Assembly: GCA_019828565.1 (NCBI GenBank)
Contig: JAHDYR010000019.1
Coordinates: 117,984 to 181,983, forward strand
Length of the DNA: 64,000 bases
Reading direction: 5' to 3'
Source of the DNA: Carpediemonas membranifera BICM
Lineage: Eukaryota; Protista; Fornicata
This document shows positions 4,917 to 59,042 of the stretch, piece after piece; position 1 is the stretch's first letter; each line of letters opens with the position of its first letter. The notes below the pieces were generated by a model. The model had not been told where the DNA came from. It searched no databases and saw nothing but the letters and a program-made list of their open reading frames with translations. Both the position numbers and the translations under genes were made by a program.

Positions 4917-7900
4917 TCACCTCTTGCTCTTGCCCGCCATCATCGACCTGACGCTGAACTTGGAGAGCTCCTCACGCACCTCACCCGGGATGTTCGGGCC
5001 GAGGCGGTCAGTAACGGTGGAAAGAACGCCCCGGAGCTCGGAAAGCGAGCCGTTGAGCGCATTGATCTCGATGCTCTGGAGATGCAGCTTCTTCTCCTGG
5101 TTGGCTGTGATTCCCTTGAGATTGTCGAGGTCGGCCCCGACAATCTTCGCCGCCTGCCTCAGCCCGTCGCTCAAGGTCTGCGCATCGGCCCGTAAACTAG
5201 CAAGCTTCTTCTCCAGACTCTCCTTTTCAGCTCTTTCCATCTCTAGCTTCTGCTTTGTTGTCGAAAGCCGCGTCTCCAGCTCTGTCACGAGCCCTTGTGT
5301 GTCCCGGGCCTGCGATAGAGCCATGCCCTGCTCATGGTGGAGCGAATTGATCTCGTCATATTTCCCAGCCAACGCTGTGAGGACGTACGTCGACCGCTGA
5401 AGCTCGGCCTGTAATGTGTTGATTGTCTCAAGATAATTGCCAGCCTCAGCCTGCATGGCGCTCATCTGGTGGCGTACGGCCAGGATCTCGTCCTCCTTGT
5501 CGGCATACTCGAGGAGGAGGTCGCCCATCTCATCGTTCTCCCTCTTCATCTCAGCAAGCTTGTCCTCGACGCGTCGGCTTGCTTTGCGCTGCTCAGCTAC
5601 CTCCTTCTCAGCCACCGCCCGCTGCTTGTCGAGCTCCACCAGGCTCGCGCTCGTCTCCTTTACCCTCTGTGTGAGTCGGGTGATCTCGGTCTCGTGGCTT
5701 GCGCACTCCGCCTTGGCGGCCTCGAGCTTGCTCTCAAGTTCGCTGACCTGGCCTATCACTGCCGTCTTCTCCATCTCCGACCTCTTCCCGGCGTCAAGCT
5801 GCTGCTTATCACTGTCATGACGTTTCCGGAGCTCTTGGTTCTCGGCATACTGCTTCTGGTACTCAGCGTAGAGCATTTCGGTGTACTCCTCGAGCTCAGC
5901 CAGGCGTGTGGCGGCCGTCTTCTCCTCTTCAATTGTGTTTGAAAGCGTGCGGGCCTCGTCCGTTCTCTCCTCGAGCTGTTTCTTTAGCTCGCTGTTCTTC
6001 TCCTTGACTTTTTCGAGCTCGGCGACCTGGCGCTCGAGAGAACGTATCATCGAGTCCTTCTCGGCCGTTGCCTCGTGGAGGGTGGCGAGCTCGGCGTTAC
6101 GGCGCTCGGCCTCATCGTCGAAGGTCGCCTTGACACGCGTCACCTGATCGGACATCGTGCTGCAGTTGGAGCGCCACTCAGCGACTGTCGCCTGCAGGTT
6201 CTCGATCTTCTCGGCAGCGTTGGCAAGCTCCACCGTCTTGCGCTGAAGCTCTTCCTCCTGTGTCTTAACCTGCGTGGTAAGCGTGCGCAGACGCTCGCGC
6301 GTCGCGTCAGTGTCGGCGCTGACCTCGGTGAGGCGGACGGCGCTTCGCTGCGCCTCGGTTGTGACGGAATTTAGCTCGGCGCGGATTGCGGCAAGCTCCT
6401 TCTCAGCGGCGTCCTTCTCGTCAGAGACCTTCGAAAAGCGGGCGCTGAGTGCGTTGAAGTCGTTCGTCAGACTGTCGGCGCGGGTGCGGAACTGTTCCGA
6501 CTCGACCTTGTGCTCGTTCGCCTTGTCCGCCAGCGCGTTCCGCTCGTTAGACAGGCGCTCAACCTCCTTCGACCGGAGCTGCAACCGGCGCTCGAGCGTG
6601 TCGACGTCGGCATCGCGGTCCCTGAGCTTCTGTGCCAGCTCGCTCACCCGCGCGTCGGTGAGGTCGACCTTCTCGCTCTGCTGCAGCAAGCGCTCCCGGG
6701 CAGCCTCGAGCTCGGTCTCCATCTTCTCTGCACGCATCGACAGCTGGCGGTAGGCGATATGGGAATTGTCGCGCTCCTCGGTCAGCTGAGAAACCCTCGT
6801 CTCGAGCTCAGTGGCGACTCCAATTGCCTGCGTCTTGTCACTCGTGCATGCGGCGAGCTTCTGCTGTGTTGTCTGGAGCTGGCTCTCGAGCTCACGAACG
6901 TGGTGGCGGTAGGCTATGATTTGGTCACGATACTGCCCATCGTCTTCGCTGTGGGCCTTAACGGCTGCCGAAAGCTGTTCGACTTCGGCTGACTTCTCGG
7001 CAAGTCGCTTCTCGAGGTCTGCCTCGCGATCCTTGTGCCTTTGCTCCGCATCAGAGTTGTTGGCGCTCGTACGCTCGAGCTCGGCGACCTGGCGCTCGAG
7101 AGAACGTATCATCGAGTCCTTCTCGGCCGTTGCCTCGTGGAGGGTGGCGAGCTCGGCGTTACGGCGCTCGGCCTCATCGTCGAAGGTCGCCTTGACACGC
7201 GTCACCTGATCGGACATCGTGCTGCAGTTGGAGCGCCACTCAGCGACTGTCGCCTGCAGGTTCTCGATCTTCTCGGCAGCGTTGGCAAGCTCCACCGTCT
7301 TGCGCTGAAGCTCTTCCTCCTGTGTCTTAACCTGCGTGGTAAGCGTGCGCAGACGCTCGCGCGTCGCGTCAGTGTCGGCGCTGACCTCGGTGAGGCGGAC
7401 GGCGCTTCGCTGCGCCTCGGTTGTGACGGAATTTAGCTCGGCGCGGATTGCGGCAAGCTCCTTCTCAGCGGCGTCCTTCTCGTCAGAGACCTTCGAAAAG
7501 CGGGCGCTGAGTGCGTTGAAGTCGTTCGTCAGACTGTCGGCGCGGGTGCGGAACTGTTCCGACTCGACCTTGTGCTCGTTCGCCTTGTCCGCCAGCGCGT
7601 TCCGCTCGTTAGACAGGCGCTCAACCTCCTTCGACCGGAGCTGCAACCGGCGCTCGAGCGTGTCGACGTCGGCATCGCGGTCCCTGAGCTTCTGTGCCAG
7701 CTCGCTCACCCGCGCGTCGGTGAGGTCGACCTTCTCGCTCTGCTGCAGCAAGCGCTCCCGGGCAGCCTCGAGCTCGGTCTCCATCTTCTCTGCACGCATC
7801 GACAGCTGGCGATACGCTGCCTGCGAGTTCGATCGCTGGTCGGTCAACTCAGCGACACTGTCCTCGAGACCACGAACAGACGTATCGAGCTCCTCTGCCA

Positions 7901-8432
7901 GCGACGTCTTCTCCACCAGCTTCTTACTCAAGTCAGCCTCTCTCGCCTGCGACTTCTGCTCGGACTCGGTCAGCTGTGTCACAGAGGCCTGGAGCTCGGA
8001 CACTTGCTTCTCAAGGGACAGGACGAGGGCATCCCGCTCTGTAGCAGACTCCTTCAACGCGGCAAGCTCTGTGTTGCGGCGCTCTTTCTCGTCTTGCTCC
8101 TTCTCGTGGTCGTAAATGGCGTTCTTGAGCTGTGTCTGAAGAGCCGAAACCTTGCTCTCCGCATCAGCAGCCCGCGTCTTCGTTTCAGCGAGCTGAGATG
8201 TACATTCTTCGCTCATCTTCTTGAAATGGAGCACATCCTGCTCTGTCTGCATGAGTTCTTGCACGAGGACCTTCATATCTTGCTGTGAGCGCCGAAGCTG
8301 CGCCCAGAGCTCACGAGATGAGAACTCAGACACATGGGATCCTCCAGAGAGCTCTAGTGCGCGTTGTGCTGGCGCTGTTGTCTCGGTTGAGGACATTCGA
8401 AGTCGAAATTCCGAGACAAATGATCCCGTCAT
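4917..8432 (-). CDS. Large coiled-coil protein (1171 aa) with an internal duplication
   Basis: E/K/Q/L/A-rich heptad sequence throughout; no globular domain recognised. Confidence 0.85.
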   Translation of the reverse strand: MTGSFVSEFRLRMSSTETTAPAQRALELSGGSHVSEFSSRELWAQLRRSQQDMKVLVQELMQTEQDVLHFKKMSEECTSQLAETKTRAADAESKVSALQTQLKNAIYDHEKEQDEKERRNTELAALKESATERDALVLSLEKQVSELQASVTQLTESEQKSQAREADLSKKLVEKTSLAEELDTSVRGLEDSVAELTDQRSNSQAAYRQLSMRAEKMETELEAARERLLQQSEKVDLTDARVSELAQKLRDRDADVDTLERRLQLRSKEVERLSNERNALADKANEHKVESEQFRTRADSLTNDFNALSARFSKVSDEKDAAEKELAAIRAELNSVTTEAQRSAVRLTEVSADTDATRERLRTLTTQVKTQEEELQRKTVELANAAEKIENLQATVAEWRSNCSTMSDQVTRVKATFDDEAERRNAELATLHEATAEKDSMIRSLERQVAELERTSANNSDAEQRHKDREADLEKRLAEKSAEVEQLSAAVKAHSEDDGQYRDQIIAYRHHVRELESQLQTTQQKLAACTSDKTQAIGVATELETRVSQLTEERDNSHIAYRQLSMRAEKMETELEAARERLLQQSEKVDLTDARVSELAQKLRDRDADVDTLERRLQLRSKEVERLSNERNALADKANEHKVESEQFRTRADSLTNDFNALSARFSKVSDEKDAAEKELAAIRAELNSVTTEAQRSAVRLTEVSADTDATRERLRTLTTQVKTQEEELQRKTVELANAAEKIENLQATVAEWRSNCSTMSDQVTRVKATFDDEAERRNAELATLHEATAEKDSMIRSLERQVAELEKVKEKNSELKKQLEERTDEARTLSNTIEEEKTAATRLAELEEYTEMLYAEYQKQYAENQELRKRHDSDKQQLDAGKRSEMEKTAVIGQVSELESKLEAAKAECASHETEITRLTQRVKETSASLVELDKQRAVAEKEVAEQRKASRRVEDKLAEMKRENDEMGDLLLEYADKEDEILAVRHQMSAMQAEAGNYLETINTLQAELQRSTYVLTALAGKYDEINSLHHEQGMALSQARDTQGLVTELETRLSTTKQKLEMERAEKESLEKKLASLRADAQTLSDGLRQAAKIVGADLDNLKGITANQEKKLHLQSIEINALNGSLSELRGVLSTVTDRLGPNIPGEVREELSKFSVRSMMAGKSKR
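6013..7811. repeat. Direct repeat of about 737 bp (6013-6749 and 7075-7811, offset 1062 bp = 354 codons)
   Basis: The two copies read identical by eye and give identical translations. Confidence 0.9.
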
Positions 8433-8516: not shown

Positions 8517-9851
8517 TCACATGTTCTTCGCCTCGTTCTTCTCAAAGCTGGGTATGCTGTGGGAGTGCCCGACAATACCGCCAGCCAGCCGCAAGCCGGC
8601 AATAAAACACACCGCAAGAAGAATCATTGTCGCAAGGAACGACAGCCCGAGAGTCTTCCAAAATGTCAGCCATGCCACGCCTACATGCCGCTCAATCAGG
8701 GGATCGACGACACAAAGACCCCAGCCAACTGTCGTTGAAGAAATGATGTCGTCAAAATCATCTAAACTGCACACGACTCCACCGCAAGCCGTGATGGGCA
8801 TCGTGTCGCCGTTGAACCGGAACTTGATGTAGTACTGTTCCCGCTCTTCAACTCCGACAATGGTTGGGTCTTGCCAGAGTTCCAGCTCTAGGTGCGAGCC
8901 GAAGTCCGTCTCGGCGGCGTCGTCGCCCCAAAGACCAAGCAGAGCAAGCATCGTCTCGACAGTAGTGTCGTGGCCCGAGTAAATGACCATCTTCGCCGTC
9001 GGCTCGTCTGTGAGGGCGGAGTAGACCATGTCTCTCCACGAATTGATCATGGGCGATCCCTTCATACGCGTTCTCTGGTCTGACACTCCGGCCCCGATCT
9101 TTTCGTGCATTTTAAGGCGGTGGATATCCATGATAACCTCGAAGTCTGCCTGAGTGATGACAGGCGGCAGACCGCAGCCCTGGGTGATACCACACCGCAG
9201 AGGGTCCGACAGAAGGCCGATGTCGGCGGCATGGAAGGTGGATCCGACGTAATCTTCGAGCTCCGCCTCCTTCTTGATACGCTGGAGGAACTCGTAGTAC
9301 TGCTCCTCGACTGCTTCCCAGGACTTGGAGTGCATGGCGTTCGTCCGCATGTCCTCAAGGACGGGGCAGTCGGCCTCGGGGTGGAAGAGCCGGTCCTCGT
9401 CGTCCTCCTGTATCCAGGGAGTGCCCAGGTTTGACCGAATAGGGACGGGCTGCACCTGGTCTGGGAGGGTGTCTGACCCCGCACCCGGCGGGTAGAGTCC
9501 GGTGAGGACGCTGTAGGCTGACATCACCGTGCGGTCGGTGCCACTGGACCGTATGAGGATTTCTGAGTTGTTGTACTTGGGCGACAGCAGCTCGTGCTCA
9601 GTGACGTAGAGGGCGTTGTAGTAGAGGCCGACGTCGTACAGCTGCTGCTGACCGAGTGGCGTAAGCTGGCCTCGACGCCTTGGACCTTCTGACCACTTGC
9701 AAGTGTCCATGTGATCGGGGAGGAAGTGCAGTGGGGAGCGAGCACCGTGTCTGAAGAGCGCTATGGCTAGTTTCAACTCATCGGCGCGTGCAGGGGAAAC
9801 AAGACACGCGATGAGAAGAAGAATGCAGATACGAGACACACGAAGACTCAT
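8517..9851 (-). CDS. Histidine acid phosphatase, lysosomal type (signal peptide, C-terminal TM helix)
   Basis: RHGARSP and YSGHDT catalytic motifs, GQLT..G..Q, RSS..DRT..SA; hydrophobic N-terminus from Met 9851; TM segment near the C-terminus. Confidence 0.92.
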   Translation of the reverse strand: MSLRVSRICILLLIACLVSPARADELKLAIALFRHGARSPLHFLPDHMDTCKWSEGPRRRGQLTPLGQQQLYDVGLYYNALYVTEHELLSPKYNNSEILIRSSGTDRTVMSAYSVLTGLYPPGAGSDTLPDQVQPVPIRSNLGTPWIQEDDEDRLFHPEADCPVLEDMRTNAMHSKSWEAVEEQYYEFLQRIKKEAELEDYVGSTFHAADIGLLSDPLRCGITQGCGLPPVITQADFEVIMDIHRLKMHEKIGAGVSDQRTRMKGSPMINSWRDMVYSALTDEPTAKMVIYSGHDTTVETMLALLGLWGDDAAETDFGSHLELELWQDPTIVGVEEREQYYIKFRFNGDTMPITACGGVVCSLDDFDDIISSTTVGWGLCVVDPLIERHVGVAWLTFWKTLGLSFLATMILLAVCFIAGLRLAGGIVGHSHSIPSFEKNEAKNM

Positions 9852-10397
9852 TGCCCGCGTCAGAAGGCAGCGTGCTTGACCGTGACCGTTCATTGAACCG
9901 ACGACGATCGGAATGACACTAATCTGCGAATGAAAGAAGGCGACGCAGGCAATTTCGACGGAGTTCAGTGCGCCTCAGCACACGCATAGGACGATAAGCC
10001 GACTGTATCCTGTGCTTTTTGGGCTTTTGCCGCGTTTCAAACGTGACCAACGCGATGGTTCCACTTGGTCAACGAGCGAGTGGGAACGGCCAGCACGGCG
10101 AAGACCAAGCCTGTGCCCAAGGGCAAGGGCAGCGTGGCCGCTCTGGTCACCTTGATGCATACCGGTTGATGGTGGCGAGGGCACAACAGTGAAAAACAGG
10201 ATTTATTACCGACTGATGTTGAAGGTCGTGAGGTCCCTGTTTCAGATGGGGGCGCGGTTCATCGGCCTGAAGAGCCCAGGGCAAAGGGATCAAAGATTGT
10301 AAAAACTGACCAGTTGCTGAGTCACTGCTCGCCACACTGTTCATGCATATAAAGGTTATAGTGCTTCCATGTAGACGTAAAAATGACGATCGCACAC

Positions 10398-11210
10398 TCA
10401 CTGGAAGAGCATCAGGTCGAGCGGCTCAAGGCCGATGTCGAGCGTGGGCATCTGAAGCTCGGATGTCGGCCCACACCGCGGCACGATCGGCGAGAACTCC
10501 GGCATGAATAGCGACAGTCGAGCCCGGCCACTGCGCTCCATCATTTGATAGACAGCCCGTGTTGCCGGAGTCGCAACTGCCGACTCAGTTCTGACTCCAG
10601 TGCCGAAATTCGAAGAGTGGCTAGTAGTTCTTTTCCCTCTCATCGGAGTCGGCCTCGTCGGAGTCATCCCGAGTCTGATCGCGGGAATGCCCAGGTCTGG
10701 AGGCTGTTTGCGGGTCACCCCGAGCGGATCATGGGACTTGCACGCCTGCACACACTCGGAGACCGGGTCGTGGCTTTCAGGGGACGTAATTGGTGCGAGC
10801 TCACCTGCATCGAGGTCCTGCTGGACCCAGGTGGGGATGGTCTGGCAGAATTCAGCGGATCCAACCATGTCACGCTGAGAAGGGAAGGGGATGGCTGGCG
10901 CAAGGCGCGGTGTCTCGAGATCAAAGGACGACATCGCAGCAATGACATCGGGCGTGCTTGTGCCGAACCGAAAACCGCCAAAGCCGAGCTGGCTGCTCTC
11001 AATGAACGTAAGCTCTTGAGAATCGTTGAATGAAGGCTGAGACTGCGAGGATCGCGATGAATCGGTGCAGGAGATGTTCTTCTCGTCGAAAAAAGGCGGG
11101 TTCACAATAGACTCGTGAATGGGCGTAACGAGCGAGTGCTGCGTGTTCTTGGCACTGACGCATGGCTCGAGGAACATTATGTCCTCACGATTCTGGTAGT
11201 TCTGGCTCAT
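10398..11210 (-). CDS. Hypothetical S/T/P-rich, probably disordered protein
   Basis: Long ORF from the first ATG (MSQNYQ); no domain recognised. Confidence 0.55.
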   Translation of the reverse strand: MSQNYQNREDIMFLEPCVSAKNTQHSLVTPIHESIVNPPFFDEKNISCTDSSRSSQSQPSFNDSQELTFIESSQLGFGGFRFGTSTPDVIAAMSSFDLETPRLAPAIPFPSQRDMVGSAEFCQTIPTWVQQDLDAGELAPITSPESHDPVSECVQACKSHDPLGVTRKQPPDLGIPAIRLGMTPTRPTPMRGKRTTSHSSNFGTGVRTESAVATPATRAVYQMMERSGRARLSLFMPEFSPIVPRCGPTSELQMPTLDIGLEPLDLMLFQ

Positions 11211-11422
11211 TCGGACAATCGCGCAATTGCGCCAAGGCCGTTGAAGATGACAACCGGAGTCGAACGACTCGGCATTCAGATTAATCAGTTGATTAGTACT
11301 AGCGGTGAATGACCAAATGACACATGCATGGTCTGTGTGGCGCAGCAGAGCTCCGGTGACACGGGTCAGCAACCCATACCGCCGTCATGGGCCAGCCATA
11401 CTCCATCGCTGGATTTATAGCC

Positions 11423-12298
11423 CTACACGTCCTTCTTCACCGGTGGGAGCCACTCAATCTCCTCGACGGTGTATGTGATGAATGGCGACCTCCAAGGGAG
11501 AGCCCAATACTTGTCGTGGTCCTCGTACTGAACAACAAAGCCGTACATGCCCTTGTACTTGGTAAACGCGGCGATGAATGCATCGAGGGACTTGTACTGA
11601 TCGATCTGGAACAACTCGTAGAACTTTTCGATGCGCTCGGCCCAGACTGGCGAGTCCATGCTCACTTCGAACGGCTTCTTCGTGATGTAGTACACGTAGT
11701 CGCGGGTGGGGCGGGTCTTGTAGTCCCAGGTGACGTGGAGCCGGTCCATTTCCTTGAGAACGTCCTCGGCATAGTCCTGGCAGGTGTTGGCCTCGAACCA
11801 CGTGGTAGACGGGTCGGGGGCCGTGTCGATTGCTCCGAGCAGACGGTAGTAGCTCATGGTGGTGTTGTAGTTGGCGGAGTAGGTGTGCACTTGGTTGAAT
11901 TGGGTACCGCTGATCTCGGCGACGTACGTGACGTTGTCCCACAGCGTGTGGTTGATACCGTTCTCGATGTGGATCTCAAGCTTGTCGTTCCACTGAACAG
12001 CCTCCTCGGCGGGCAGGGAGGTGTTCACTGTGGGGAACACTGCGTGCGTGAGGTTGTTCGCGAGGAGCTCGAATGTGAACGACCGGGAGCCGCCAATTTC
12101 CACGAATCCCATGCCAGCGTGGTATGCACCGATGGCTTTGGTGATATCACCGACCTGCTTGTCGAGAAGAGGGTCGAGCATGTAGAAAGAAGCCCAACGG
12201 GACGTAGGCTCCACATCAACCCACGGAACATCGTGGATGATGGCTAAAGCACCGTAAATGAAGCAAAGGAGAACGAGAGTGACGCCCTTGCCAACCAT
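11423..12298 (-). CDS. CLN5: CLN5 homologue (lysosomal BMP synthase, NlpC/P60-like Cys-His-Glu enzyme)
   Basis: Signal peptide. Colinear matches to human CLN5 as recalled: YHAGMGF~MHDAIGF, TFE~TME, VAEISGTQFNQ~VATISGNMFNQ, TWFEANTC~TWFDSYDC, IEKFYELF~IKRFYYPF, YWALPWRSPFITYTVEEI~YWFLPMKFPFIKITYEEI. Several N-glycosylation sequons. Confidence 0.9.
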   Translation of the reverse strand: MVGKGVTLVLLCFIYGALAIIHDVPWVDVEPTSRWASFYMLDPLLDKQVGDITKAIGAYHAGMGFVEIGGSRSFTFELLANNLTHAVFPTVNTSLPAEEAVQWNDKLEIHIENGINHTLWDNVTYVAEISGTQFNQVHTYSANYNTTMSYYRLLGAIDTAPDPSTTWFEANTCQDYAEDVLKEMDRLHVTWDYKTRPTRDYVYYITKKPFEVSMDSPVWAERIEKFYELFQIDQYKSLDAFIAAFTKYKGMYGFVVQYEDHDKYWALPWRSPFITYTVEEIEWLPPVKKDV

Positions 12299-12592
12299 GC
12301 GAGGTCAAAACGAATGGCTTTAAAGTGTCACCGATCTCAACACGAGATTGCATCCGCCGTATCGACAAGATTTTCTGCCTGATTGTTAACCCAATCGGAC
12401 TGTCCCGCCGCCACAACCTCGCGTGCCAGTCCTTCCAGGCCGGAAGGCAGTCGGACTTGGCAAGCACCAATGCTCCCAGCGGCCAAACCCAGGCTAGGTG
12501 CGGTTTGTACAGCCAGACATCTCTCGGATATCGGTAAATCTCCGGCCAGCCTTGCCAGCATTTATATCAGGTCGACAGAGCACCGTGCCGTG

Positions 12593-13810
12593 TCACCCCA
12601 CGAGCAGACCGACGCTGAACCCGAGCCCGAGCTCTCCCAGCGGGCCGACAGCGTCACTCACCGCCCGGCCGGCCATCTGCCGCATGCTCTCAGCGACGTC
12701 GGCGGGCACGTCCCGCAATGCCGCGGTGAACTCGGCCCGGAACATGCGAGTCACGCCGCGGGTCCATGCGCTGGTCATTGCCATGGCGGGTGTCGCTACG
12801 CGGGCAGGGTATGTCTTGTGTTCACTCGCGAGGGTGGGGCAGAACAGGATCTCGGCCTGCAGGGCTGTGGTTGTGAGGGTCTCCCGCAGTGCAGACACGG
12901 CCTCGGTGACAAACGCCGCCCTCGTGATCTTGTGGTGCGACGCCTTCCGCCTCAGCTGCTGCAGTGTCTCTCTCAACGAGTCCCGCCGGCACCCCAGGAG
13001 GACGGCCGCCTCGGACTGGGCGTCGGTCGTCGGCCGCAGCTGCCGCAGCCGGGAGATGGATGCAATGACCCGCAGCGGGTCGTGCGTGCTGCCGAGGAGG
13101 GCTTCGATGGCCGAGACGCACTGGTCCCCAACCGCATCCAACTCTGCGCGGAAGTGCTTGATGAAGTCCCGCTGCCGCACGACCTCGGATGGCTCAGGTC
13201 GGCCCTCAATCAACTCTGTCAGCCGGTCGGCGATGGCAGTGCCGTCTGCCAGGGCAGCGAAGAGCTGCTGGACGGTGTCGTCGTCGGGGTCCGCTGGGTC
13301 CGCCCCAAAGGACGCCGCGTACAGCGCACGGGCCCTCTCTGGGATGCCCAACACGGCGTTGATGTCGGTGATGGAGCTCCGGATGGCTGCGACCGTGTCG
13401 AACGTGCGGTGCATGCGGGAGAGCATCGTGGGTAGCCGGGCGATGTTGCTGCTGAGCCCAGAGGTATGTTTCACAATCCCAGCTGCTGAGAGAGCTTTTG
13501 GCTGGTTCAGGTCCTTTGCGGAGATCCGCATGATCTCTGGGCGGAGCCCAATGCGGTCCACTTCCCGTTTAAGGTCGTAGATCCGGGAGTCGTAGGCGTC
13601 GAGACTCGAATAGGCGCGCATGGATTCAGGAACGCTCTTGTACTCATTCACCAGCTGAATAATCCAGGAGTCCATGTAGCGGCCCTGTTCGTCTGTCAGT
13701 GAAATGACGTCGTCATCCGTGCGAGCCTGTTTCGGGTGTAGGCCCCTATAAAGCCGGCTGTAGCGTGTGTGTCTTCGGGCGTAGGGCTGACATGATGATC
13801 TGTGCCACAT
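12593..13810 (-). CDS. Helical hypothetical protein, possibly a Vps51/CATCHR-type tether subunit
   Basis: 405-aa ORF. Coiled-coil N-terminus ending INAVLGIPERARAL weakly resembles Vps51 LQFLFELPSRL. Start uncertain. Confidence 0.5.
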   Translation of the reverse strand: MWHRSSCQPYARRHTRYSRLYRGLHPKQARTDDDVISLTDEQGRYMDSWIIQLVNEYKSVPESMRAYSSLDAYDSRIYDLKREVDRIGLRPEIMRISAKDLNQPKALSAAGIVKHTSGLSSNIARLPTMLSRMHRTFDTVAAIRSSITDINAVLGIPERARALYAASFGADPADPDDDTVQQLFAALADGTAIADRLTELIEGRPEPSEVVRQRDFIKHFRAELDAVGDQCVSAIEALLGSTHDPLRVIASISRLRQLRPTTDAQSEAAVLLGCRRDSLRETLQQLRRKASHHKITRAAFVTEAVSALRETLTTTALQAEILFCPTLASEHKTYPARVATPAMAMTSAWTRGVTRMFRAEFTAALRDVPADVAESMRQMAGRAVSDAVGPLGELGLGFSVGLLVG

Positions 13811-13919
13811 GCCATGTACAACATGTCACTCGCGTCATCATGAGGGGATTCCCCCACCGCACCGCCAGTCGCCCATCGTCAATAACGTTTATAAGGCTGG
13901 GACACACACCCTAACCTGC

Positions 13920-15423
13920 CTATTTGTCCGCGAGCCAGGTGTGGTCCGCGATGAGGGTCCAGAGACACGATCCGCTGATGCCAACAGTCATGGTCAGTGT
14001 GATGAGCGTGACACAGATCTCCTTGAGGTCCTTCGGGATCGAGGTCGAGTGCATTACGAGGTAGAATGTGTTCACATAAATGCACCCACCGAGGAGACCG
14101 ACAAAGAGCATGGAGGGGAACTGCACCCACATCGTGAAATACTTGAACTTGAAGTAGTCTTGGGCGTTCCAGATCAGGAAGTTGAGGAACTGCAGGAAGG
14201 TCAGCACCTCGATGCACTTGAACTTGAAGAAGCTGAGCGACGACCGGCTGATCAGAACACCGAACTGGTACGCGAACTGCAGGGCAATGTAGTCCTCCTC
14301 CGCGTGGGGGTCATAGAGCGGCTCGGCCTTGGCGGCGTTACCGACACTGACGCCGTACTCGAAGAAGTAGACCAGCATGATCTGGAGCTCGTAGCGGCGA
14401 CAGACCCACGCTGCCTTGGCCACGCGGCCGAAGAACACGCCGATGTTGTGGAAGAAGAGCTTGAGGCTGCCCTGAACGCCGAGTCTGGCGAGCTTGGCGC
14501 TGATGTCTTCGGCCTTGAGCGCGGTAGTCTCCTCGAAGTGCCCGTCCGCCTCCAGGTCGAGCAGGCCTTCCATCTCCCTCTCCCCGATGTGGTCGACCTC
14601 CCCTAGGAGGTACTCGTCGCCCTTGATCTCGTCATACTCGTCGAAGGCGGAGACGTGGTGCGTCATCTGCATGGGCGTGTCCGAGTTACGGCGCGTGTGG
14701 GCGATGGACTGGCCCAGCGAGCCTGTGCCAGAGCCGCTTACGCCGATGAGGGCAGCCTCCCGGTCGTCATCGGCAAGCTCGGGGTGCTGGGCCATGCTGT
14801 CGGGTTTACGAAGCAGGAGGAAGCAGATGACGAACGGGACAGAGAGGGTCGACATGCAGACGAACGTCACGACCAGTGGGACGTCGAGGAAGGTCAGAAT
14901 GAGGAAGAACAGCGAGGCCGCGACCCCGGCCAGGCCAGTGCCGCTGCTGTAACCGGCAACAGACTGCGGTGTGAAGTGGCGGACGTGCGCCAGGAGGATG
15001 GACTCACCGAAGGAGAGGGAGGCGCCGACCACGACGATGGAGATGAGCGCGACGTTGAAGTTCCCGATGACGGCGGCAAAGGCAATCATCAGGGGACCTA
15101 CCAGCATAAAGGTGGCGTTAAGGAAGATGCGGAGAAGGATGGGCACCCGCTCAAGCAGGATGTTGAGCGGGCGGACGACAAAGCCGGCCGCGATATTGGC
15201 CCAAGGGATCTGTGTGAGAAACGGCACCGGCGCGTGTATGACAAACAAGAGGAAGCTGGTTCGTGGCGTTAAAGTCATCAGCGAGTTTCTTTGCCGCGCT
15301 CAGCACGGTAGTGTACAGGAAATAGTTCAGCATCCCTAATGCGAAGAAAAGGGCGAAATTGGCCATATAATGCTTGTCATATGATGCTCCAGAGCCATCA
15401 TTTGTAACAACACCGCCGCCCAT
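13920..15423 (-). CDS. CLN3: CLN3/battenin (Btn1) lysosomal MFS-like protein; exons 15423-15247 and 15209-13920
   Basis: FFALGMLNY..YTTVLSAA, GYSSGTGLAGV, LVYFFEY, YQFGVLISRSS, GLLGGCIYVNTF are CLN3-family motifs. A 37-nt intron joins the two ORFs in frame. Confidence 0.93.
15210..15246 (-). other. Spliceosomal intron, 37 nt
   Basis: GTTTGT...CTCACACAG; joins QLPL|IPWANI. Confidence 0.85.
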
Positions 15424-16547
15424 GTTTGATTAAGCGTCAATAAGCCGTTACGGATGGGATACTACGAATTCGACTGCTTCCCGAGTCTCGGCGGGTCGCG
15501 GAACAAGATACGCAAATCTTCTGATCAGGAAGATAGATGGACGTGAAATGCCATACTTGCTCGGCGTACATGCATACCTGGCCGTTTAGCCAAGTCTCCA
15601 ACTTTCCCAGTCTCGGGGCAGCAGTCTATAAAAGGTCTCGGTCGAGATCGACGCGTCCAAGCGCAGATACGGTATGATAGACTTGCGATGAGTGCAGAGC
15701 TCGCTTGAACCAACAGGTCCGTGACCTACATGTGAAAAAGTTGCGAACGACAGGGGCGGGTCACAGTTTTAAAAGTGAGGTCAGTCCAAGACTACTATTG
15801 TTGTTGAAACATTCACGGGTGGTCATGCCTTGTATTCGTTGCCGAGCTGGGTAGTTGTGACAATGGGCAGATCTGACAAATCAGAAATTCGGACGAAAAT
15901 GACCCCCCAAGGGTGTGAATCCAATGGGGGCTTCACGCCGCGGGCTGCCCTCCCACATACACTCGCTCACCGCCAGCAGCTGCTAGGTCGTCCAAGTGTA
16001 TCATCTAGGCTCACTGTCCTAGGTCCATCTGATGTCGCGCGGCAGTCTCACACCGCCCACGCACTCCCAGCTATGACCTGGGTTCCGCACCGTACAAAGT
16101 GGCGCGGATGTCCCGGTGTGCAGCAAGGGCCACAGGCCAATGCAATACCACGGGTCCGAAGACACCATGGCGCACAGCTTGGATTTTGACATCATAAGAT
16201 GGTGGCGGACTTATCTTGTGCCGCTCCAGGGTCCCGTCGGCGCACCTGATTGATGTTGGTTAGTTCGGCACCATGAAGTGACCGAAACGGAAGAAATAGA
16301 ATGAAAAATAAGATCGAGACATGTGGATAGAGCATTGAGCACGAATTCAGCACAAAAGATGCATGGACAACACCGATGGCGCAATGCTGGCAACTCCGCG
16401 TAAAAAAAAGGTGCAGGTTAAACTCCGTCCCCTCATCCAACTTGGGTGTGCCAGCATATGCCTGTCGTGATGGCTGACGCTCTAACCCTATGCAGCGCAC
16501 GCGTCGTCGCCAGTTTAAGTCAAGTTGCAAAGTCCGAAAATTTGTAG

Positions 16548-17055
16548 ATGACGCTGGCAGCACCTACAATTCTTATTCCCAGGTACTATGCTCAGCTCAC
16601 TGTTGACATATCCACCGTAGTAGCGCTGAATTTCGTCGTGGTTCTTATCGTCACCGTTTGTTCGCTCAGCACTATTGACACAGCTCGTTTCCGTGGTCCC
16701 CTCTGTCGATGCAACCGATCAGCGCACCATACCGTCACTATTCTTCAGTTTCCTATTCGCCTGCATCTGGATTATTGCCGAAATCGTCCGCCTGCGCTTC
16801 TGTGCCATCGGCAACAAGAGCGAACGGCTGCCCGTGCTCACATTCGGCCTCGTAATCTCCCTGATCCCCCAGCTACCGATCCTGCTCTTCTTCCTGGTGC
16901 TTTTCCCCCTGATGGTCGGCTGGAGCACCCCTATGTTCATCGCCTCATTGCTCGCCATCCTGGCTGACGTGCTCGGCATGCTGCCGCTGTACCTCAGTCT
17001 TAGACGACTGTCCATGGCGACTGCCGAGGTCGTCAACCTGCTCGGGCTGCACTGA
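16548..17055 (+). CDS. TMEM17: TMEM17-family ciliary transition-zone membrane protein; exons 16548-16655 and 16684-17055
   Basis: AEIVRLRFCAIGNKSERLPVL...LIPQLP matches the Transmemb_17 signature; four hydrophobic segments after splicing. Confidence 0.75.
16656..16683 (+). other. Spliceosomal intron, 28 nt
   Basis: GTTTGT...TTGACACAG; in-frame join. Confidence 0.8.
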
Positions 17056-17422
17056 GGGCTGGGTGAGGGTCGCTGTGCCAGGGAGGACGTCCGCTCCTCT
17101 CACTGGCCATCCGGCTCCATCTACACTTATCCCCGCTAACTGGCGGGATTACTTGCTATGGCCGCAGCTGTGTAAATACTCCACTGGGACCACCCAGGTT
17201 CTCATGGTGTTGGTCGCTGGTGACCACTAGTCCATTATCTATGATACTTTCTTGCCCTGACCGACCAGCACGCCGTAGGAATGTCCCTGACTCGCCCTGT
17301 ACGATACGTACGATGGAGATTGACAGCCTGTGAGGAGTATCAGTGGGTGCGGTCACGGTGGAAACGTTGTCCTATGGAGTCGGGTCACAACCATCGACCA
17401 CCAGAGAAGCTCGTTAACAACC

Positions 17423-39977: not shown

Positions 39978-40694
39978 CTATCCGGCGTTGCTCTTTCCGA
40001 TGACACTCTTCATCACAGTCCCGATCTGCTCGAGCAAATCCCCCCCATCGCGGAGCAAGGACGTGTACAGCTTCGACCTATCGTCCCTCGCCTTGGTCCC
40101 AATGACCCCCGCGACCATGTCGATCCTACTCTCGAGGTGGCCGAGAGCAATGTACCCTGCCAGCGCCTTCTCGAGCACGGCCGGGTCCACGCCGAATGTA
40201 GACGCCATACGATCGATAGAGACGTTCTGGTATGCGACCAGGAACTGCTTGAACGCCTTGACGCGGCATGTGTGGAGGTAGTGGGCGGCGTGTGGTGCCA
40301 GGCGCTCGTCCGTCCGCATCCAGAGCGAGAAGTACTCAAGAAGCTCCACAAAGCGCGCATAGTTGCACTCATACAACGAGGACATGAATTCGCCGACGAG
40401 GGGCTCCGACTCGGAGGTGACGGCGATGACCTCGGGGGACTGGATGAGCTTCTCCTTCAGCTCGGCGCGGTCGAGGGTATACACACCGCACAGGCATGTG
40501 TACTTGATCATTTGTTCGAAGGACATGGCGTCTGTGGCATTAAACGTCTCTAGAAGTGAGATTAGAAGGGTTGCTGCCTTCTTGAAGTTACGGCGCTTCA
40601 TGCAGTCCAATGCTTCTATCGCCTTCTGTCTGTTCTTCTTCTCGAAGTCTGTAGTTTCGTTCTCAACGTTGTCAGGAGTCTTCTCGGCCGGCAT
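39978..40694 (-). CDS. RPN7: Rpn7/PSMD6-like PCI protein, N-terminally truncated
   Basis: DFEKKNRQK...RNFKKAATL...TF...YT......LDRAELKEKLI.SPEV, LYECNY..F, FLVAYQNVSI..MA..FGV, RIDMVAGVI; only 238 aa. Confidence 0.75.
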   Translation of the reverse strand: MPAEKTPDNVENETTDFEKKNRQKAIEALDCMKRRNFKKAATLLISLLETFNATDAMSFEQMIKYTCLCGVYTLDRAELKEKLIQSPEVIAVTSESEPLVGEFMSSLYECNYARFVELLEYFSLWMRTDERLAPHAAHYLHTCRVKAFKQFLVAYQNVSIDRMASTFGVDPAVLEKALAGYIALGHLESRIDMVAGVIGTKARDDRSKLYTSLLRDGGDLLEQIGTVMKSVIGKSNAG

Positions 40695-40899
40695 TCGTGA
40701 GTTCTCTTATCGATGTCATGACCCTTGCCATTTATCGTTTATCGTTCGAGTCAGAGGCCCTGCCGGCAGTCATGTAACGCTGGGAGAGCACGAACTAAGG
40801 TCACTGGAGCCTCTCCCCTGATCTCGCTTCTCCCGCCTCTTCCATGACTCTTCTAACAACAGTCATTTTTCATTGAAGCCACCTCTATCCGCATGTTTT

Positions 40900-42540
40900 T
40901 TACTTCCTCTTGATGAGCACGCTGGTCTTCACTGTCTTGTTCACGACCTTCTTCGGTTTGTGCTTCTTCTCGCTCTTCCCGGCCTTTGTCTTGCCCTTGG
41001 GCTTGGCCAGCAGCCCCAGGCCAGACGCCTCCTCCTCCTCGTCGGCCTCGTCCGTCTTCCCCGTAGCCTTCATCAGGAGCCTCTTCACCCGGCCCGTCTT
41101 CTCCTCGTGCGCGGCCTTGACGTGTGCGTACCGGTTCCGGACCCGCTTGGTCGCCAGCGCGAGACGCGCCTCCTCCTCTTCGGAGTCTATGTCCCCGACG
41201 TCTGCCTCGAGGTCCTCCTCAGGGACGACGAGCGCCACACCGTCCGAGGTGCGGTAGCGAGCCTCCTTGAGCCGCTCGGCCCAGGCGGTGGCCCACCGGG
41301 CGCGGACCTCCTTGAACCTCTCAGGAACGTGGGTGATGCTCGTGCCGGAGGTGAAGTCCTCGAACGGCGAGAGGTGCGGCGGGGCGGCCTGGCCGTTGCT
41401 GTACTCGTCGAACGGCATCCTCATGCGGAAATTGATTGAATCAAAGACCCACTGGGGGAGGATCGACTCTGGCGTGTCTGGGCGTTCGCTGACCACCGTT
41501 GACCGCTCAGTAGGCTCTGAGACAACAGTCCCGCCGCACGCCCTGATAGCGAGAGCGACAGGCTTGGTCGGGACGCCCCTCGAGAGGAAGAACTCCATGC
41601 CGTTGAGCAGGCCGGGCAGCTGGACCGTGTCCTCATTCTCGAGCAACTGCAGCAGCTGCGGGGCGTACTGGGGGTCCTCGGGGTCCATACTTCCGAGCAG
41701 CTCGACCGTCCTAGTGCGGTCGGCCTCGGCGTCCGTGGCGTCATCGGCCGAGTCGGTTGGCGCAGCGAGGGTGATGGCGTCGAGCCAGGCGCCGTTCTTG
41801 TCCTTCTCCGCGTCCACGGCCGGGGGGTAGGCCACGCCGCGGCGGGTGTAGAGTCTGTAGAGCACGAAGCCCGCGAGGGTGGTGTAGAACTCGAGGAACG
41901 TCTCCATCACCCGGTAGTCAACCTCGTCTGTCTGCTCCTGGGAGAACTCGTGGGGCATGACCCACGTGATGGGTGTCCCGTCGAGGTCGACCTGCATGTA
42001 CACGCCGCGGATGGACACAAAGGACTTGGTCAGGATCTTGGTGGAGGCGACATACGCCTGCCACTCGCGGCTAAGGCGCTGGCAGGTCATGATCATCTTG
42101 TTCTGGACGTTGTCGCTCGAGTACATGGTGGCGAAGAGGTGCACCATGTTGAGCGCGTCCGACATGTCGCGGAGGGCGTCGTGGAATGACGGGTAGCGCT
42201 CGCGGATGAGGTGGTCGAGAGTGTAGCGAGGCATCGCATCGGCAAGCTGATCGGCGTGCTCAGTCTCCTTGCGGGCGTCAAAGCGGGCGACCTTCTTGAG
42301 ATGGGCCTTGATCGAGCGGAACTTGTCCATAAGAGGCTCGTTTGCAAGCCACTGGATATCTGTGGTGAGATAGTACGTCTTCCCGATGACTTTCTCCTTG
42401 ATGTGAGGCGGATCTCTGGGGAATATGCCCTTGAGGATGCACAGGCGGCGGAAATCCGAAAGAGAGAGCTGCAAGTACTTAAGCGCCTGGTTACGGGTCA
42501 TGTACGACGAATGCCTTTTCTCCTGCTTCTTAGCGCCCAT
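40900..42540 (-). CDS. PES1: Pescadillo/Nop7 (60S biogenesis, BRCT domain)
   Basis: YMTRNQALKYLQLSLSDFRRLCILKGIFPRDP, LDHLIRERYPSFHDALRD, VDYRVMETFLEFY, PQWVFDSIN, PPHLSPF. Confidence 0.96.
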   Translation of the reverse strand: MGAKKQEKRHSSYMTRNQALKYLQLSLSDFRRLCILKGIFPRDPPHIKEKVIGKTYYLTTDIQWLANEPLMDKFRSIKAHLKKVARFDARKETEHADQLADAMPRYTLDHLIRERYPSFHDALRDMSDALNMVHLFATMYSSDNVQNKMIMTCQRLSREWQAYVASTKILTKSFVSIRGVYMQVDLDGTPITWVMPHEFSQEQTDEVDYRVMETFLEFYTTLAGFVLYRLYTRRGVAYPPAVDAEKDKNGAWLDAITLAAPTDSADDATDAEADRTRTVELLGSMDPEDPQYAPQLLQLLENEDTVQLPGLLNGMEFFLSRGVPTKPVALAIRACGGTVVSEPTERSTVVSERPDTPESILPQWVFDSINFRMRMPFDEYSNGQAAPPHLSPFEDFTSGTSITHVPERFKEVRARWATAWAERLKEARYRTSDGVALVVPEEDLEADVGDIDSEEEEARLALATKRVRNRYAHVKAAHEEKTGRVKRLLMKATGKTDEADEEEEASGLGLLAKPKGKTKAGKSEKKHKPKKVVNKTVKTSVLIKRK

Positions 42541-42662
42541 TGCAGCCTGTTTCTGGAGACTTCGAACTCGTCTTGAAAACGCTGTTATGTGAGGTCACAT
42601 AAATGAGGAACAACCAGCCGAGCCTCTCCGCCCATGCCTTCCACCGCCGCCAGCAATCCTAT

Positions 42663-43853
42663 TTACTTCCACAGCATCTCCTGCGAGATGTCCTTGTTCT
42701 TGCTCTTATTCATCACCTTGACGGCCGCCTGAACGAAATCGTCCTGTGTCACGTACACTCTCCTCTCCCTCAGCGCAAACATGCCCGCCTCGGTGCACAC
42801 CGCCTTCATATCAGCGCCTGACGCACCGCCCATGGTCTCGGCCACGGCCTTGAGGTCGACCCCGCGGCGGACGTTCATCTTTCTCGAGTGGATCCTGAGG
42901 ATGTCGAGCCTGGCCTCGTCAGACGGGTTGGGGAACTCGATCTTACGATCAATACGGCCAGGGCGAAGCAGAGCTTCATCGAGGATGTCGATTCGGTTGG
43001 TTGCCATCAGAACCTTGATGTCCTGCTTCGACTCGAACCCGTCGAGCTGATTGAGTAATTCAAGCATCGTACGCTGCACCTCCGAGTCACCGCCCTTCGA
43101 GCCCTCGACACGTCTGCTGCCGAGGGAGTCGATCTCGTCCATGAAGATGATCGAGGGTGCATGGGCGCGGGCCATTACAAACAGCTCGCGGACCATGCGG
43201 GAGCCCTCGCCGATGTACTTCTGCACCAGCTCGGAGCCGGAGACACGGATGAACGTGCAGTCGGTGCTGTGGGCGACGGCTCGGGCGAGCAGCGTCTTAC
43301 CCGTGCCGGGCGGGCCGTACAAGAGCGCGCCCTTGGGCTGTGCGATGCCCAGGGCCTCGAAGAGCTCGGGCTGCTTGATGGGGAGTTCTACCACCTCGCG
43401 GATCTCCTTGATCTGCTTGTCGAGGCCACCGATGAGATCGTACGTCGAGTCTGGGACCTTCTCGACCTTCATCAGCGAGACAAGGGGGTCCACCTTCGTC
43501 GGGAGAACCATGTGGAGTGTGTATGAGTCGGAGCGGAGTGCTACACGGCTGTGGACGGTGAGGTCGGATGTATTGATCTTCTTGTCGATGTCGACAATGT
43601 ACTTCTCATCCTGGCCAGTCTTCACCAGAGCCTTGCGTCCATCCATGATCTTGATAACCTCACCTACAGAGGAGCTTGGCTCTTGGAGGAGGCCGATCTC
43701 TTCTGTCAGGAGCTGTACTTGTGTATTCAGCTCGTTTCTCTGTGCTTGCAGCCTGGAAAGGTTTGTTTCCTTGACCTTCTTAAGTTTTTGAAGCTCTTGG
43801 ATTCTTCCATCGAGATATGTATCAGCGGTAAAGCCACCAACTTCTTCTACCAT
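42663..43853 (-). CDS. RPT6: 26S proteasome AAA-ATPase Rpt6
   Basis: [73 protein letters not shown]-terminal LWK. Confidence 0.97.
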
Positions 43854-56362: not shown

Positions 56363-57043
56363 ATGAATCAGAACACAAATAACCACTCCGATGAAGTGAT
56401 CTGGAACGTTCTGAAGCATAGCTTTTGCTCACACATGGTGAAGACGAAGAAACAGACGTTGTGCCGCTATAGGTACAATGTGAGCGGCGTTTGTGATAGA
56501 AAGAGTTGCACTCTGGCTAACGCGGAGTATGCTACCATCCTAGAGGAGAAGGGCAAGCTCATCCTGTTTGTGAAGGCCGCCGAGCGTGCTTACAATCCCG
56601 CCGATATGTGGGAGCAAACCGAGCTCTCCACGGACCTGGAGGAGGCCAAGCAGCAGATCACGACCGAGGCAGGGCATCTGGACCAGTATATTATCGATAA
56701 CCTCCACAACCGGTTCGAGCGCCTCACCGCCATGCTCAAGAGGATGAAGTCGCTCAAGAACAAGGTCCAGCCCAAGCTCGTCGCCATCAACAAGAAGGTC
56801 GAGCGTCGTGAGCGGACCCGGCAAGCCAAGGCGCTCGTTGCTGCCAAGATCGAGGGCGGCATCAAGAGTGAGCTGCTCGCCAGACTCAAGGAGGGGTCGG
56901 CGTACAACGACATCTACAACTTCCACAAGGAGGCGTATGCTGATGAGGAGGAGGAAGAAGACGCCGGGTTTGACCAGGAGTTTGTCGGGGAGTTTGAGTA
57001 CGAGGCCGAACTCGAGGACATGGAGGACACCCTCCAGGAATAA
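56363..57043 (+). CDS. MAK16: MAK16 60S biogenesis factor
   Basis: SDEVIWNVL..SFCS, CRYRYNVSGVC.RKSCTLAN..YAT, KKVERRE..R..KAL.AAKIE..I..ELL.RL, acidic tail. Confidence 0.93.
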   Translation: MNQNTNNHSDEVIWNVLKHSFCSHMVKTKKQTLCRYRYNVSGVCDRKSCTLANAEYATILEEKGKLILFVKAAERAYNPADMWEQTELSTDLEEAKQQITTEAGHLDQYIIDNLHNRFERLTAMLKRMKSLKNKVQPKLVAINKKVERRERTRQAKALVAAKIEGGIKSELLARLKEGSAYNDIYNFHKEAYADEEEEEDAGFDQEFVGEFEYEAELEDMEDTLQE

Positions 57044-57146
57044 GTAAACATATGCGGTTCAGACGACACGGCGTCCCAGAGCAGGGATCCAACGACGACT
57101 GGTGATCGATTTGCCAGTTTTGGCCACAAAATTCGTCATCATACAA

Positions 57147-59042
57147 ATGTCTGTGAGACTGGAGCTAGAGCACGCTATAGGGCTTTCTTCAATCGCTAAT
57201 GTGCTAAAAATCCATCCTGATGGCCAACATTTGATCTATCCCGCCTGTGGAACAGTAATCATCAGCGACATGCTTGATCCTACCGATCAGGCGTTCATGA
57301 GAGGCCACAACGACCACATCACATGCCTTGATGTGTCCAGATCCGGGAAATTCATTGTTACTGGCCAGGCTGGCTACGATTCGGACGTCATTCTGTGGGA
57401 CTACGACAAGAAGACGATGCTCAGCCAGCTGTCGGAGCACGATAACGGCGTCAACGCAGTATCCTTCGCCCCCGATGAGCGTTTCTTCGTTTCCGTCGGC
57501 TGTGTCCACGACCGCAAGCTCATTGTCTGGGAGACTGCGACCGGCTCCATCGTCGCCATCACCGGCGTGAACTACGACGTCAAGGTTGCCTCCTTCCTCG
57601 GCCGCACGGTAGATCTCAAGGGCAGGCCCCAGTCGACCTACCGCATCGTCACCTGTGGCAGCGAGGGCCAGCTCGACGAGTGGATCCTCAACCCGGCTGA
57701 CGGGACCATCGCCCAGAGACCCATGGGCACCAGGTCGGTCCAGCGGTCCTTCCTCTCAATCCAGGCCAGCCCGGACGGCCAGCACATTTTCGCTGCGACG
57801 TATAGTGGAGATGTACTAATTTTCTCGGTTACCACGGGCAAGCTGGTCCAGACAGTGCCTGTGTCCGACGGCGAGGCGAATACTATCATCGTCGAGCCTA
57901 TCGGACATGCCGCGAACGAGCCGTCCGATGCCACCGAGCGTTTCTACTACCGCACATACGCCGCCGAGGGCCAGGCGACGACCACGCTTTCCGTAGCAGG
58001 TGGGGATGGACTGGTCTACACGTACGAGGGCCACCCCGGAGCGACGTGGGTTAAGGTGGATGCCGTCGCCGTCGATGCGGGGGTCACCTCACTGTGCAGG
58101 GACCCCACCGGCGGCTGCGTCGGCTGCACCAAGCGCGGCACGATCTTCCGCATTGACGTGGACGGTGTCGTGGACACCGTGGCCGAGAACCACACGGGTC
58201 CCATCGTCGGGTCAGCCTTCCTCGACCAGACGGAGGAGCTCTTCGTCGCCGTGTCGGAGGATAAGACCGCCAGGGTCTGGGATCTTGCAGACTACGGCGT
58301 CGCACTCACCGTGCGGCTGCCGTACGTCCCCACATGCGTCGCCATCGCCGACATCTGCATCCTTGTCGGCTTCGAGAACGGATGCGTCGGGTGCTACGAC
58401 GCAGAGACCGCTGAGGAGCTTTGGACAGTCGCTGACGCGGACCCACAGGGCGTCACGTCCATCGCAGCCAACGCCAGGGACGCTGTCTTCGTCACAGGCG
58501 GCCGCACGGGCGATGTTCGGCTTTGGACATTCCGTAGGGCCCTCAAGTTCAGCGCCAAGGAGCATCGGGGATCAGTGACCGACGTGGTACTGCTCAACGA
58601 CGGCCAGCACGCCCTGACATCCGGCCAGGACCATAGCCTCATCCTATGGGACCTGGCTCGCGGTTGCAGAGTCAAGCAACTGCTTCTCAAGTCAGGCAGC
58701 GTCAACGGTATCGCGTTGGGCCAGGACCAGCGGTATGCCGTCTCTATCGGATCAGATCGCCGTATCCATTACTGGGATCTAGCCAAGGAAACTCCGATCC
58801 TGGTCAACGGGGCACACGACGCCGAGATCACGGCCGTGGCTCGTGTCAAAGATCTCGTCGTGACCGGTGACTCGGATGCGACTGTGCATTTATGGGAATG
58901 GGACGAGCGTGACCCGCCGACGGAGCCTCTACAGGCCGTCCGAATCCACTCGGCCGCTGTGACGTCGATCATCGGGCAGGGTGACGTGGTGGTGACTGGT
59001 GGTGCTGATGACAACCTCATGGTCTGGCGTATTGTGGAATAA
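57147..59042 (+). CDS. CFAP52: CFAP52/WDR16-like WD40 flagellar protein
   Basis: LELEHAIG...HPDGQHLIYP..GTVII...QAFMRGH...CLDVSRSGKFIVTGQ; many WD repeats. May be a paralogue. Confidence 0.7.
   Translation: MSVRLELEHAIGLSSIANVLKIHPDGQHLIYPACGTVIISDMLDPTDQAFMRGHNDHITCLDVSRSGKFIVTGQAGYDSDVILWDYDKKTMLSQLSEHDNGVNAVSFAPDERFFVSVGCVHDRKLIVWETATGSIVAITGVNYDVKVASFLGRTVDLKGRPQSTYRIVTCGSEGQLDEWILNPADGTIAQRPMGTRSVQRSFLSIQASPDGQHIFAATYSGDVLIFSVTTGKLVQTVPVSDGEANTIIVEPIGHAANEPSDATERFYYRTYAAEGQATTTLSVAGGDGLVYTYEGHPGATWVKVDAVAVDAGVTSLCRDPTGGCVGCTKRGTIFRIDVDGVVDTVAENHTGPIVGSAFLDQTEELFVAVSEDKTARVWDLADYGVALTVRLPYVPTCVAIADICILVGFENGCVGCYDAETAEELWTVADADPQGVTSIAANARDAVFVTGGRTGDVRLWTFRRALKFSAKEHRGSVTDVVLLNDGQHALTSGQDHSLILWDLARGCRVKQLLLKSGSVNGIALGQDQRYAVSIGSDRRIHYWDLAKETPILVNGAHDAEITAVARVKDLVVTGDSDATVHLWEWDERDPPTEPLQAVRIHSAAVTSIIGQGDVVVTGGADDNLMVWRIVE

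Follow-up and report, generated by a model that had tools for sequence, protein, structure and literature searches.

Close spacing of CLN5, CLN3 and an acid phosphatase gene in Carpediemonas membranifera, a true feature of gene order that is probably neutral and lineage-specific

In mammals, CLN5 converts two molecules of lysophosphatidylglycerol (LPG) to bis(monoacylglycero)phosphate (BMP) and glycerophosphoglycerol; the latter leaves the lysosome in a CLN3-dependent manner, with CLN6 epimerising it and CLN8 re-acylating it in the endoplasmic reticulum, and CLN3 is needed to clear glycerophosphodiesters from the lysosome (PMC13661276, PMC13692256). Human CLN5 is described as a lysosomal BMP synthase or cysteine S-depalmitoylase, and its catalytic centre consists of His166, Cys280 and Tyr258, with Glu183 supporting the histidine (PMC9012467). 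A physical interaction of CLN5 with CLN3 has also been reported in the literature. The human genes are unlinked, CLN3 being located on chromosome 16 and CLN5 on chromosome 13. Genes encoding both proteins, together with an acid phosphatase gene, are found within positions 8517-15423 of a stretch of 64,000 nucleotides (C19:117984-181983, called the window in what follows; 58 % GC) of the genome of the free-living anaerobic metamonad Carpediemonas membranifera. The genome, searched here as 24,237,836 bases on 69 contigs, has been described as 24.2 Mb in 69 contigs with 57.1 % GC and 8300 predicted proteins (PMC8516963, Table 1). A previous sequence-only reading of the window had suggested that the linkage represents an ancient or convergent BMP/glycerophosphodiester module. 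The mammalian biochemistry of CLN5 and CLN3 from which that suggestion started is sound (PMC13661276, PMC13692256).

Five genes on the minus strand occupy positions 8517-15423, separated by intergenic gaps of 212-504 bp and encoding, in order of position, a histidine acid phosphatase, an orphan of 270 amino acids, CLN5, an orphan of 360 amino acids and CLN3. Three of these five consecutive genes were endolysosomal by Pfam profile search, and the CLN3 and CLN5 families, both proposed earlier from the letters alone, scored above their Pfam cut-offs. The Pfam matches and coordinates also confirmed that a single gene lies between CLN5 and CLN3, and that a lysosomal-type acid phosphatase, a His_Phos_2 match at 8517-9893, lies two genes beyond CLN5 on the same strand. 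The sequence-only reading knew of no description of such a cluster, and none was found in the literature searched for genomic linkage of CLN3 and CLN5. The cluster truly exists in the gene order of C. membranifera. Its genes are genuine, intact and expressed, and are unexceptional representatives of known families. We consider it probable (roughly 0.65) that their closeness is a neutral, lineage-specific adjacency. The common orientation of the five genes is uninformative in this respect, since the minus strand holds approximately 25 of the 31 genes in the window (about 80 %), including eight in a row around the cluster.

The CLN5 gene (11423-12298, minus strand) encodes 291 amino acids which matched the CLN5 family (PF15014) with 63.7 bits, compared to a cut-off of 27. 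This was the only match in the genome, and CLN5 is thus single-copy within 24.2 Mb. Human CLN5 (6R99) was recovered by phmmer with the window protein as query, and residues H60, E77, Y151 and C173 aligned with the human His166, Glu183, Tyr258 and Cys280, respectively. In an alignment of 36 homologues H60, Y151 and C173 were the only invariant columns. The AlphaFold2 (AF2) model had a predicted local distance difference test (pLDDT) score of 91.2, and the sole significant PDB match obtained for it with Foldseek was 6R99 (E 5.8e-17, template modelling (TM) scores 0.71/0.73), the fold having a papain-like core related to N1pC/P60. The N-terminus is hydrophobic and signal-like, five N-x-S/T sequons are present, and there are only two cysteines, C12 in the leader and C173, so that C173 is alone in the mature protein.

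The window protein thus resembles human CLN5 in family membership, fold, catalytic residues, signal-like N-terminus and the presence of several N-glycosylation sequons, but it shares only 18 % identity with it in the structural alignment, is shorter (291 compared to 407 amino acids) and lacks the extended N-terminal strand. The human disulfides Cys119-Cys208 and Cys126-Cys214 are both absent as well, because the mature window protein has a single cysteine; the two N-terminal disulfides are a feature of the human structure and do not define the family. The protein is predicted to be a lumenal, glycosylated cysteine transacylase with an intact active site. The CLN5 proteins of dictyostelids (373-393 amino acids; locus L010, 2891-4166; L021, 10001-11390; L022, 10001-11246) carry an extra match to the ATG27 family which is absent from Carpediemonas and human CLN5.

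The CLN3 gene consists of two exons on the minus strand. The open frame at 13920-15278 matched PF02487 with 146.6 bits, and an upstream frame at 15151-15423 matched positions 2-27 of the CLN3 profile. An intron of 37 nt (15210-15246, GT..AG, read as CT..AC on the plus strand) was skipped in an RNA contig which joined 15209 to 15247. The RNA contig of exon 2 (13939-15209) reaches up to the splice joint. Exon 1 (15247-15423, 59 codons), containing the conserved N-terminal motif, and exon 2 (13920-15209, 429 codons and the stop) together encode 488 residues, as many as there are in the public protein P0107 ("Batten's disease protein Cln3 [Carpediemonas membranifera]"), which is identical to the window CLN3 and aligns to both exons. 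The exons were searched separately and the full-length profile test was made with the public protein of 488 amino acids, which scored 164.6 bits over positions 2-388 of the 395 in the profile; residues 270-452 were used as the query in the word search of protein databases. The profile match of exon 1 and the RNA-confirmed intron show that the end of the gene had been placed correctly at 15423, and the other coordinates given in the sequence-only reading were right as well.

Like human CLN3 and yeast Btn1 (battenin), the window protein matches PF02487 from end to end, including the N-terminal motif of exon 1, but it differs from them in a long acidic insertion in the middle of the protein and in having a second, old paralogue on contig C31, approximately 45 % identical to it. 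The genome contains these two CLN3 copies, and the one on C31 had no lysosomal neighbours and no CLN5 nearby. The window CLN3 is a multi-pass membrane protein, presumably needed for the export of glycerophosphodiesters. As for the remaining steps of the mammalian cycle, no match to CLN6 was obtained anywhere in the genome, in a search made without a positive control, and approximately eight genes of the TLC/CLN8 type were found, none of them on this contig.

The acid phosphatase gene (8517-9893, minus strand, 458 amino acids) matched PF00328 (His_Phos_2) with 100.6 bits over profile positions 1-354. The protein has an N-terminal hydrophobic leader, the motif RHGARSP at residue 48 and GHD at 308, and ends in one membrane span followed by a tail of 22 residues. 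Its best solved relatives were prostatic acid phosphatases (E 1e-28). It shares with the histidine acid phosphatases of the ACP2/ACP3 type the membership in His_Phos_2 and the RHGxRxP and HD catalytic motifs. ACP2 has a leader and, C-terminally, a single membrane span with a short tail, and the topology of the window phosphatase is the same. Unlike the ACP2/ACP3 type, the window protein has no obvious tyrosine-based sorting motif in its 22-residue tail and is one of approximately eight His_Phos_2 members in the genome. Judged by these features it is a type-I membrane-anchored histidine acid phosphatase whose leader and membrane span fit a secretory or endolysosomal route as predicted location, and the label "lysosomal-type" is a fair description of it.

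To place the linkage in a wider context, the loci of CLN5 and CLN3 in other organisms were compared with the window. Among database sequences the CLN5 closest to that of the window was P0002 (46 % identity), from assembly GCA_002919055.1 and run SRR4018424. This assembly, the closest relative available, is very probably Carpediemonas frisia, of which a metagenomic bin has been described (PMC5437931, PMC8516963). In it CLN5 is located on PPCM01000833 and CLN3 (P0108) on PPCM01000472. The latter is the orthologue of the window CLN3, since it scored higher against the window gene (385 bits) than against the C31 paralogue (159+82 bits). The neighbours on the CLN5 contig of the relative (18.8 kb) were WD40, RCC1-like, La, CRAL-TRIO/PH, NOG1 and ribophorin genes, and those on its CLN3 contig (36.7 kb) were TPR, AMPK-beta, metallophosphatase and L13e genes. 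No CLN3 was present within 5 kb upstream or 10 kb downstream of CLN5, nor any CLN5 within 10 kb of CLN3. Any linkage of the two genes in the relative would have to span more than 15 kb and include other genes in between. When all open frames of the window were compared by tblastn to both contigs of the relative, only CLN5 and CLN3 were found, in addition to generic ankyrin and RCC1 repeats. An RCC1-like gene, which in the relative is adjacent to CLN5 and in the window is located beyond CLN3, was considered as a conserved neighbour and rejected, as the identity was only 30 % over 84 amino acids and the orientation relative to CLN5 differed.

Elsewhere, no CLN3 was found within 10 kb of CLN5 in Anaeramoeba flamelloides (two loci), Polysphondylium violaceum, Acytostelium subglobosum or Tieghemostelium lacteum, nor within the CLN5 contigs of a metagenomic eukaryote, and the CLN3 locus of Balamuthia had no CLN5 nearby. 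These absences were checked among called genes and by tblastn of the raw DNA, in Tieghemostelium among called genes. Altogether seven CLN5 loci from six other organisms lacked a CLN3 nearby, and three other CLN3 loci lacked a CLN5. The comparison of synteny proposed with the sequence-only reading thus gave no conserved linkage in the congener or at the other loci examined; for a convergent module the linkage would have to occur a second time, which it did not at any of these loci. At the dictyostelid CLN5 loci a GH38 mannosidase or a GDPD-domain gene was present nearby.

The RNA data consisted of assembled contigs from four small runs of one 2017 sample. The presence of the spliced CLN3 joint and of poly(A) tails indicates that the runs contain RNA. 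Each gene had one RNA contig, all five being expressed in the same culture, and in none of the four runs did a contig bridge two genes. The CLN5 message, represented in all four runs, is monocistronic and extends on the minus strand from 12315 to 11406, with 5' and 3' untranslated regions of 17 nt each followed by a poly(A) tail, seen as poly(T) loose ends before 11406 on the plus strand. Contig depth, taken as a rough measure of expression, was 2173 for CLN5, 177 for CLN3, approximately 150 for the 360-amino-acid gene and 127 for the 270-amino-acid gene, the CLN5 contig being approximately 12 times deeper than that of CLN3; in the three smaller runs only CLN5 was assembled. These data speak against the genes being transcribed jointly and against their having similar steady-state levels.

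In RNA contigs from two of the runs the CLN5 mRNA was preceded, beyond its 5' end at 12315, by 22 additional letters, identical in both. This 22-mer has no match in the genome when up to 2 mismatches are allowed and is probably a library adaptor. A TATAAA-like motif occurs 5-30 nt past the stop codons of CLN5, the 360-amino-acid gene and CLN3 (11400-11422, 12560-12592 and 13880-13919, respectively) and is also carried by a copy of the 360-amino-acid gene on contig C63. With the CLN5 poly(A) site located 17 nt past the stop, the motif may be a poly(A) signal of C. membranifera.

The two genes interspersed among the endolysosomal ones had been nominated by the sequence-only reading as candidate partners of CLN5 and CLN3. 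The gene at 10398-11210 (minus strand, 270 amino acids), covered by its own RNA contig (10227-11231), had no Pfam match at E<=10. Its product is Ser/Pro-rich and predicted to be disordered, and the Atlas model had a pLDDT of 0.38 and was without informative neighbours. Paralogues are located on contigs C39 (63 % identity) and C2 (43 %), making a family of three members found in this genome only. The other gene is annotated from the 46th codon of an open frame which extends to 13810, and from the annotated start (12593-13675, minus strand) it encodes an all-helical protein of 360 amino acids without a significant Pfam match. No homologue was found beyond this genome by word search. Language-model neighbours of the protein were clusters of COG7, COG4, Vps51 and Dor1 (0.87-0.93), but there was no Pfam match to Vps51, COG or exocyst families even at E<=10 and the AF2 model was poor (pLDDT 48); it may be a candidate protein of the tethering-subunit (CATCHR) kind.

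A copy of the 360-amino-acid gene with 94 % identity is present on contig C63, and homology between the copies is confined to window positions 12588-13708, i.e. the coding region with 33 and 5 nt in addition. Both copies are expressed, as the 57 differences which distinguish the C63 copy were present in one RNA contig and a second one matched the window exactly, and the ratio of non-synonymous to synonymous differences per site (pN/pS) of approximately 0.16 between them indicates purifying selection. A retrocopy origin was examined; neither copy shows a poly(A) remnant which would indicate the direction of copying. Both intervening genes are lineage-specific, multi-copy orphans tied to CLN5 and CLN3 by position alone, and for this reason they are poor candidates for partners.

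Duplicates are common in this assembly. Most subunits of the 20S proteasome and of CCT were either present 2-3 times on different contigs, with no difference in profile score, or duplicated locally, inverted or in tandem (e.g. C2:103902, C1:1358731 and C40:82523; C63:514027-523753; C39:669924 and 680218). Recent duplication on a wide scale, or copies left uncollapsed, is indicated by this genome-wide pattern, which the 94 % copy of the 360-amino-acid gene fits.

The probability of a chance neighbourhood was estimated from the copy numbers. With 8300 genes and two CLN3 copies, the pre-specified chance of finding CLN5 within two genes of a CLN3 is approximately 1e-3, and that of a His_Phos_2 gene within three genes of CLN5 approximately 6e-3. 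Many paralogues had been named as a circumstance which would make the adjacency expected; the counts are in fact low, and for this particular pair adjacency is not expected. However, the pair was noticed after the fact, and a value of 1e-3 is for that reason unimpressive. There are approximately 16,600 gene pairs at such spacing in the genome. By our estimate one or a few such pathway pairs would arise by chance in a genome, and about four if each gene had even two close pathway partners. We estimate that the adjacency is statistically unremarkable when after-the-fact selection is allowed for. Such pairs are also easily found, as shown by two further ones in the same window, namely an Rpn7-like PCI gene and a proteasomal Rpt AAA ATPase with Pescadillo between them (39978-43853), and Mak16 directly beside a WDR3-like beta-propeller, both of ribosome biogenesis (56363-59042). 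Distinct subunits of the 20S proteasome and of CCT were never closer to each other than approximately 20 kb, and these complexes thus show no general clustering of partner genes.

The locus consists of five independent, monocistronic genes, three of them ordinary orthologues of endolysosomal proteins, and CLN5 would presumably form BMP from lysophosphatidylglycerol with release of glycerophosphoglycerol as it does in mammals. If the adjacency is neutral and lineage-specific, the closeness of the genes would be specific to the gene order of this species, most likely brought about by neutral rearrangement and local gene duplication, and would not reflect an inherited or selected BMP/glycerophosphodiester module. 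Several observations weigh against this interpretation. The assembly of the relative is fragmented (N50 9.5 kb), which leaves room for linkage beyond approximately 15 kb, and around both genes hardly any background synteny with the relative exists, so that a cluster assembled after the split of the two species would look just like this one. The chance of the named pair is only approximately 1e-3, to which the acid phosphatase adds its approximately 6e-3, and CLN5 and CLN3 are linked in function with unusual directness, one being the enzyme and the other needed for exporting its by-product (PMC13661276). The transcript data, moreover, cover a single sample. An alternative is a lineage-specific functional neighbourhood, in which rearrangement after the split would have placed the genes in a shared chromatin or regulatory domain, kept for co-regulation of endolysosomal lipid turnover. 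The low copy numbers leave room for such an explanation, as do the presence of three endolysosomal genes among five consecutive ones, the direct pathway link in mammals and the expression of all five genes in the same culture. It is nevertheless rather unlikely, since there is no conservation which would indicate selection, the transcripts are separate with contig depths more than 10-fold apart, and the pair was picked afterwards from a very large number, in a window which contains the Rpn7/Rpt and Mak16/WDR3-like pairs in addition. The recent copy of the 360-amino-acid gene elsewhere furthermore indicates a locus in flux. The more specific proposal, that a recent rearrangement created a co-regulated neighbourhood for endolysosomal lipid turnover comprising acid phosphatase, CLN5 and CLN3, is slightly more doubtful still.

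Inheritance of the CLN3-CLN5 linkage from an early eukaryotic ancestor, as an ancient BMP/glycerophosphodiester module, would account for the adjacency itself and would agree with the age of both families across eukaryotes, but the linkage is absent from the congener and from all other loci examined, and ancient synteny was rejected on the basis of the seven CLN5 and three CLN3 loci without it. We regard it as very improbable. Transcription of the co-oriented genes together as a polycistronic, operon-like unit, suggested by the common strand and the short gaps, is more improbable again: the CLN5 contigs extend no further than 17 nt upstream of the ATG and have poly(A) 17 nt past the stop, each gene has a contig of its own with none bridging, and most genes of the window share the strand in any case. 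The separate RNA contigs and the CLN5 poly(A) tail led us to reject an operon, and this account and the ancient module together take up only a sliver of the total probability. The module which the sequence-only reading had described as "ancient or convergent" is not supported. Measured by the refuting conditions named with that reading, it fails on the lack of synteny, on the separate transcripts with very different contig depths and on the orphan nature of the intervening genes. The cluster also resembles eukaryotic metabolic gene clusters, in that genes which are linked in function but not homologous occur together within a few kb on one strand, but it differs from them in being unconserved, in lacking a shared transcript and in having two unrelated orphans interspersed.

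Were the linkage nevertheless selected, the BMP cycle proposed recently would gain independent support from evolution, and new partners would be indicated. Were the genes co-regulated, this would be a rare case from a free-living metamonad of an enzyme encoded beside the gene needed for the export of its by-product, and the mammalian CLN5-CLN3 BMP cycle would be supported independently at the genomic level. Apart from gene order, C. membranifera, an organism with a reduced gene set, keeps a minimal, disulfide-free CLN5 with its catalytic residues and two CLN3 paralogues, which suggests that CLN5 and CLN3 form an old pair that has been kept in many lineages. The window protein also offers a compact CLN5 for biochemical study.

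Some further features of the window were observed around the cluster. Nearly 2 kb (15424-17329) separate CLN3 from a divergent RCC1-like gene, an unusually long distance for this compact region, and no open frame with a Pfam match was found in it. A PlsC-type acyltransferase gene (PF01553, 34.6 bits) at 62942-63766 on the plus strand lies approximately 47 kb from CLN3, too distant for membership of the cluster. On the other side, the minus-strand gene at 4917-8432 encodes a coiled-coil protein of 1171 amino acids with an apparently exact internal repeat of approximately 250 residues, suggestive of a very recent duplication within the gene.

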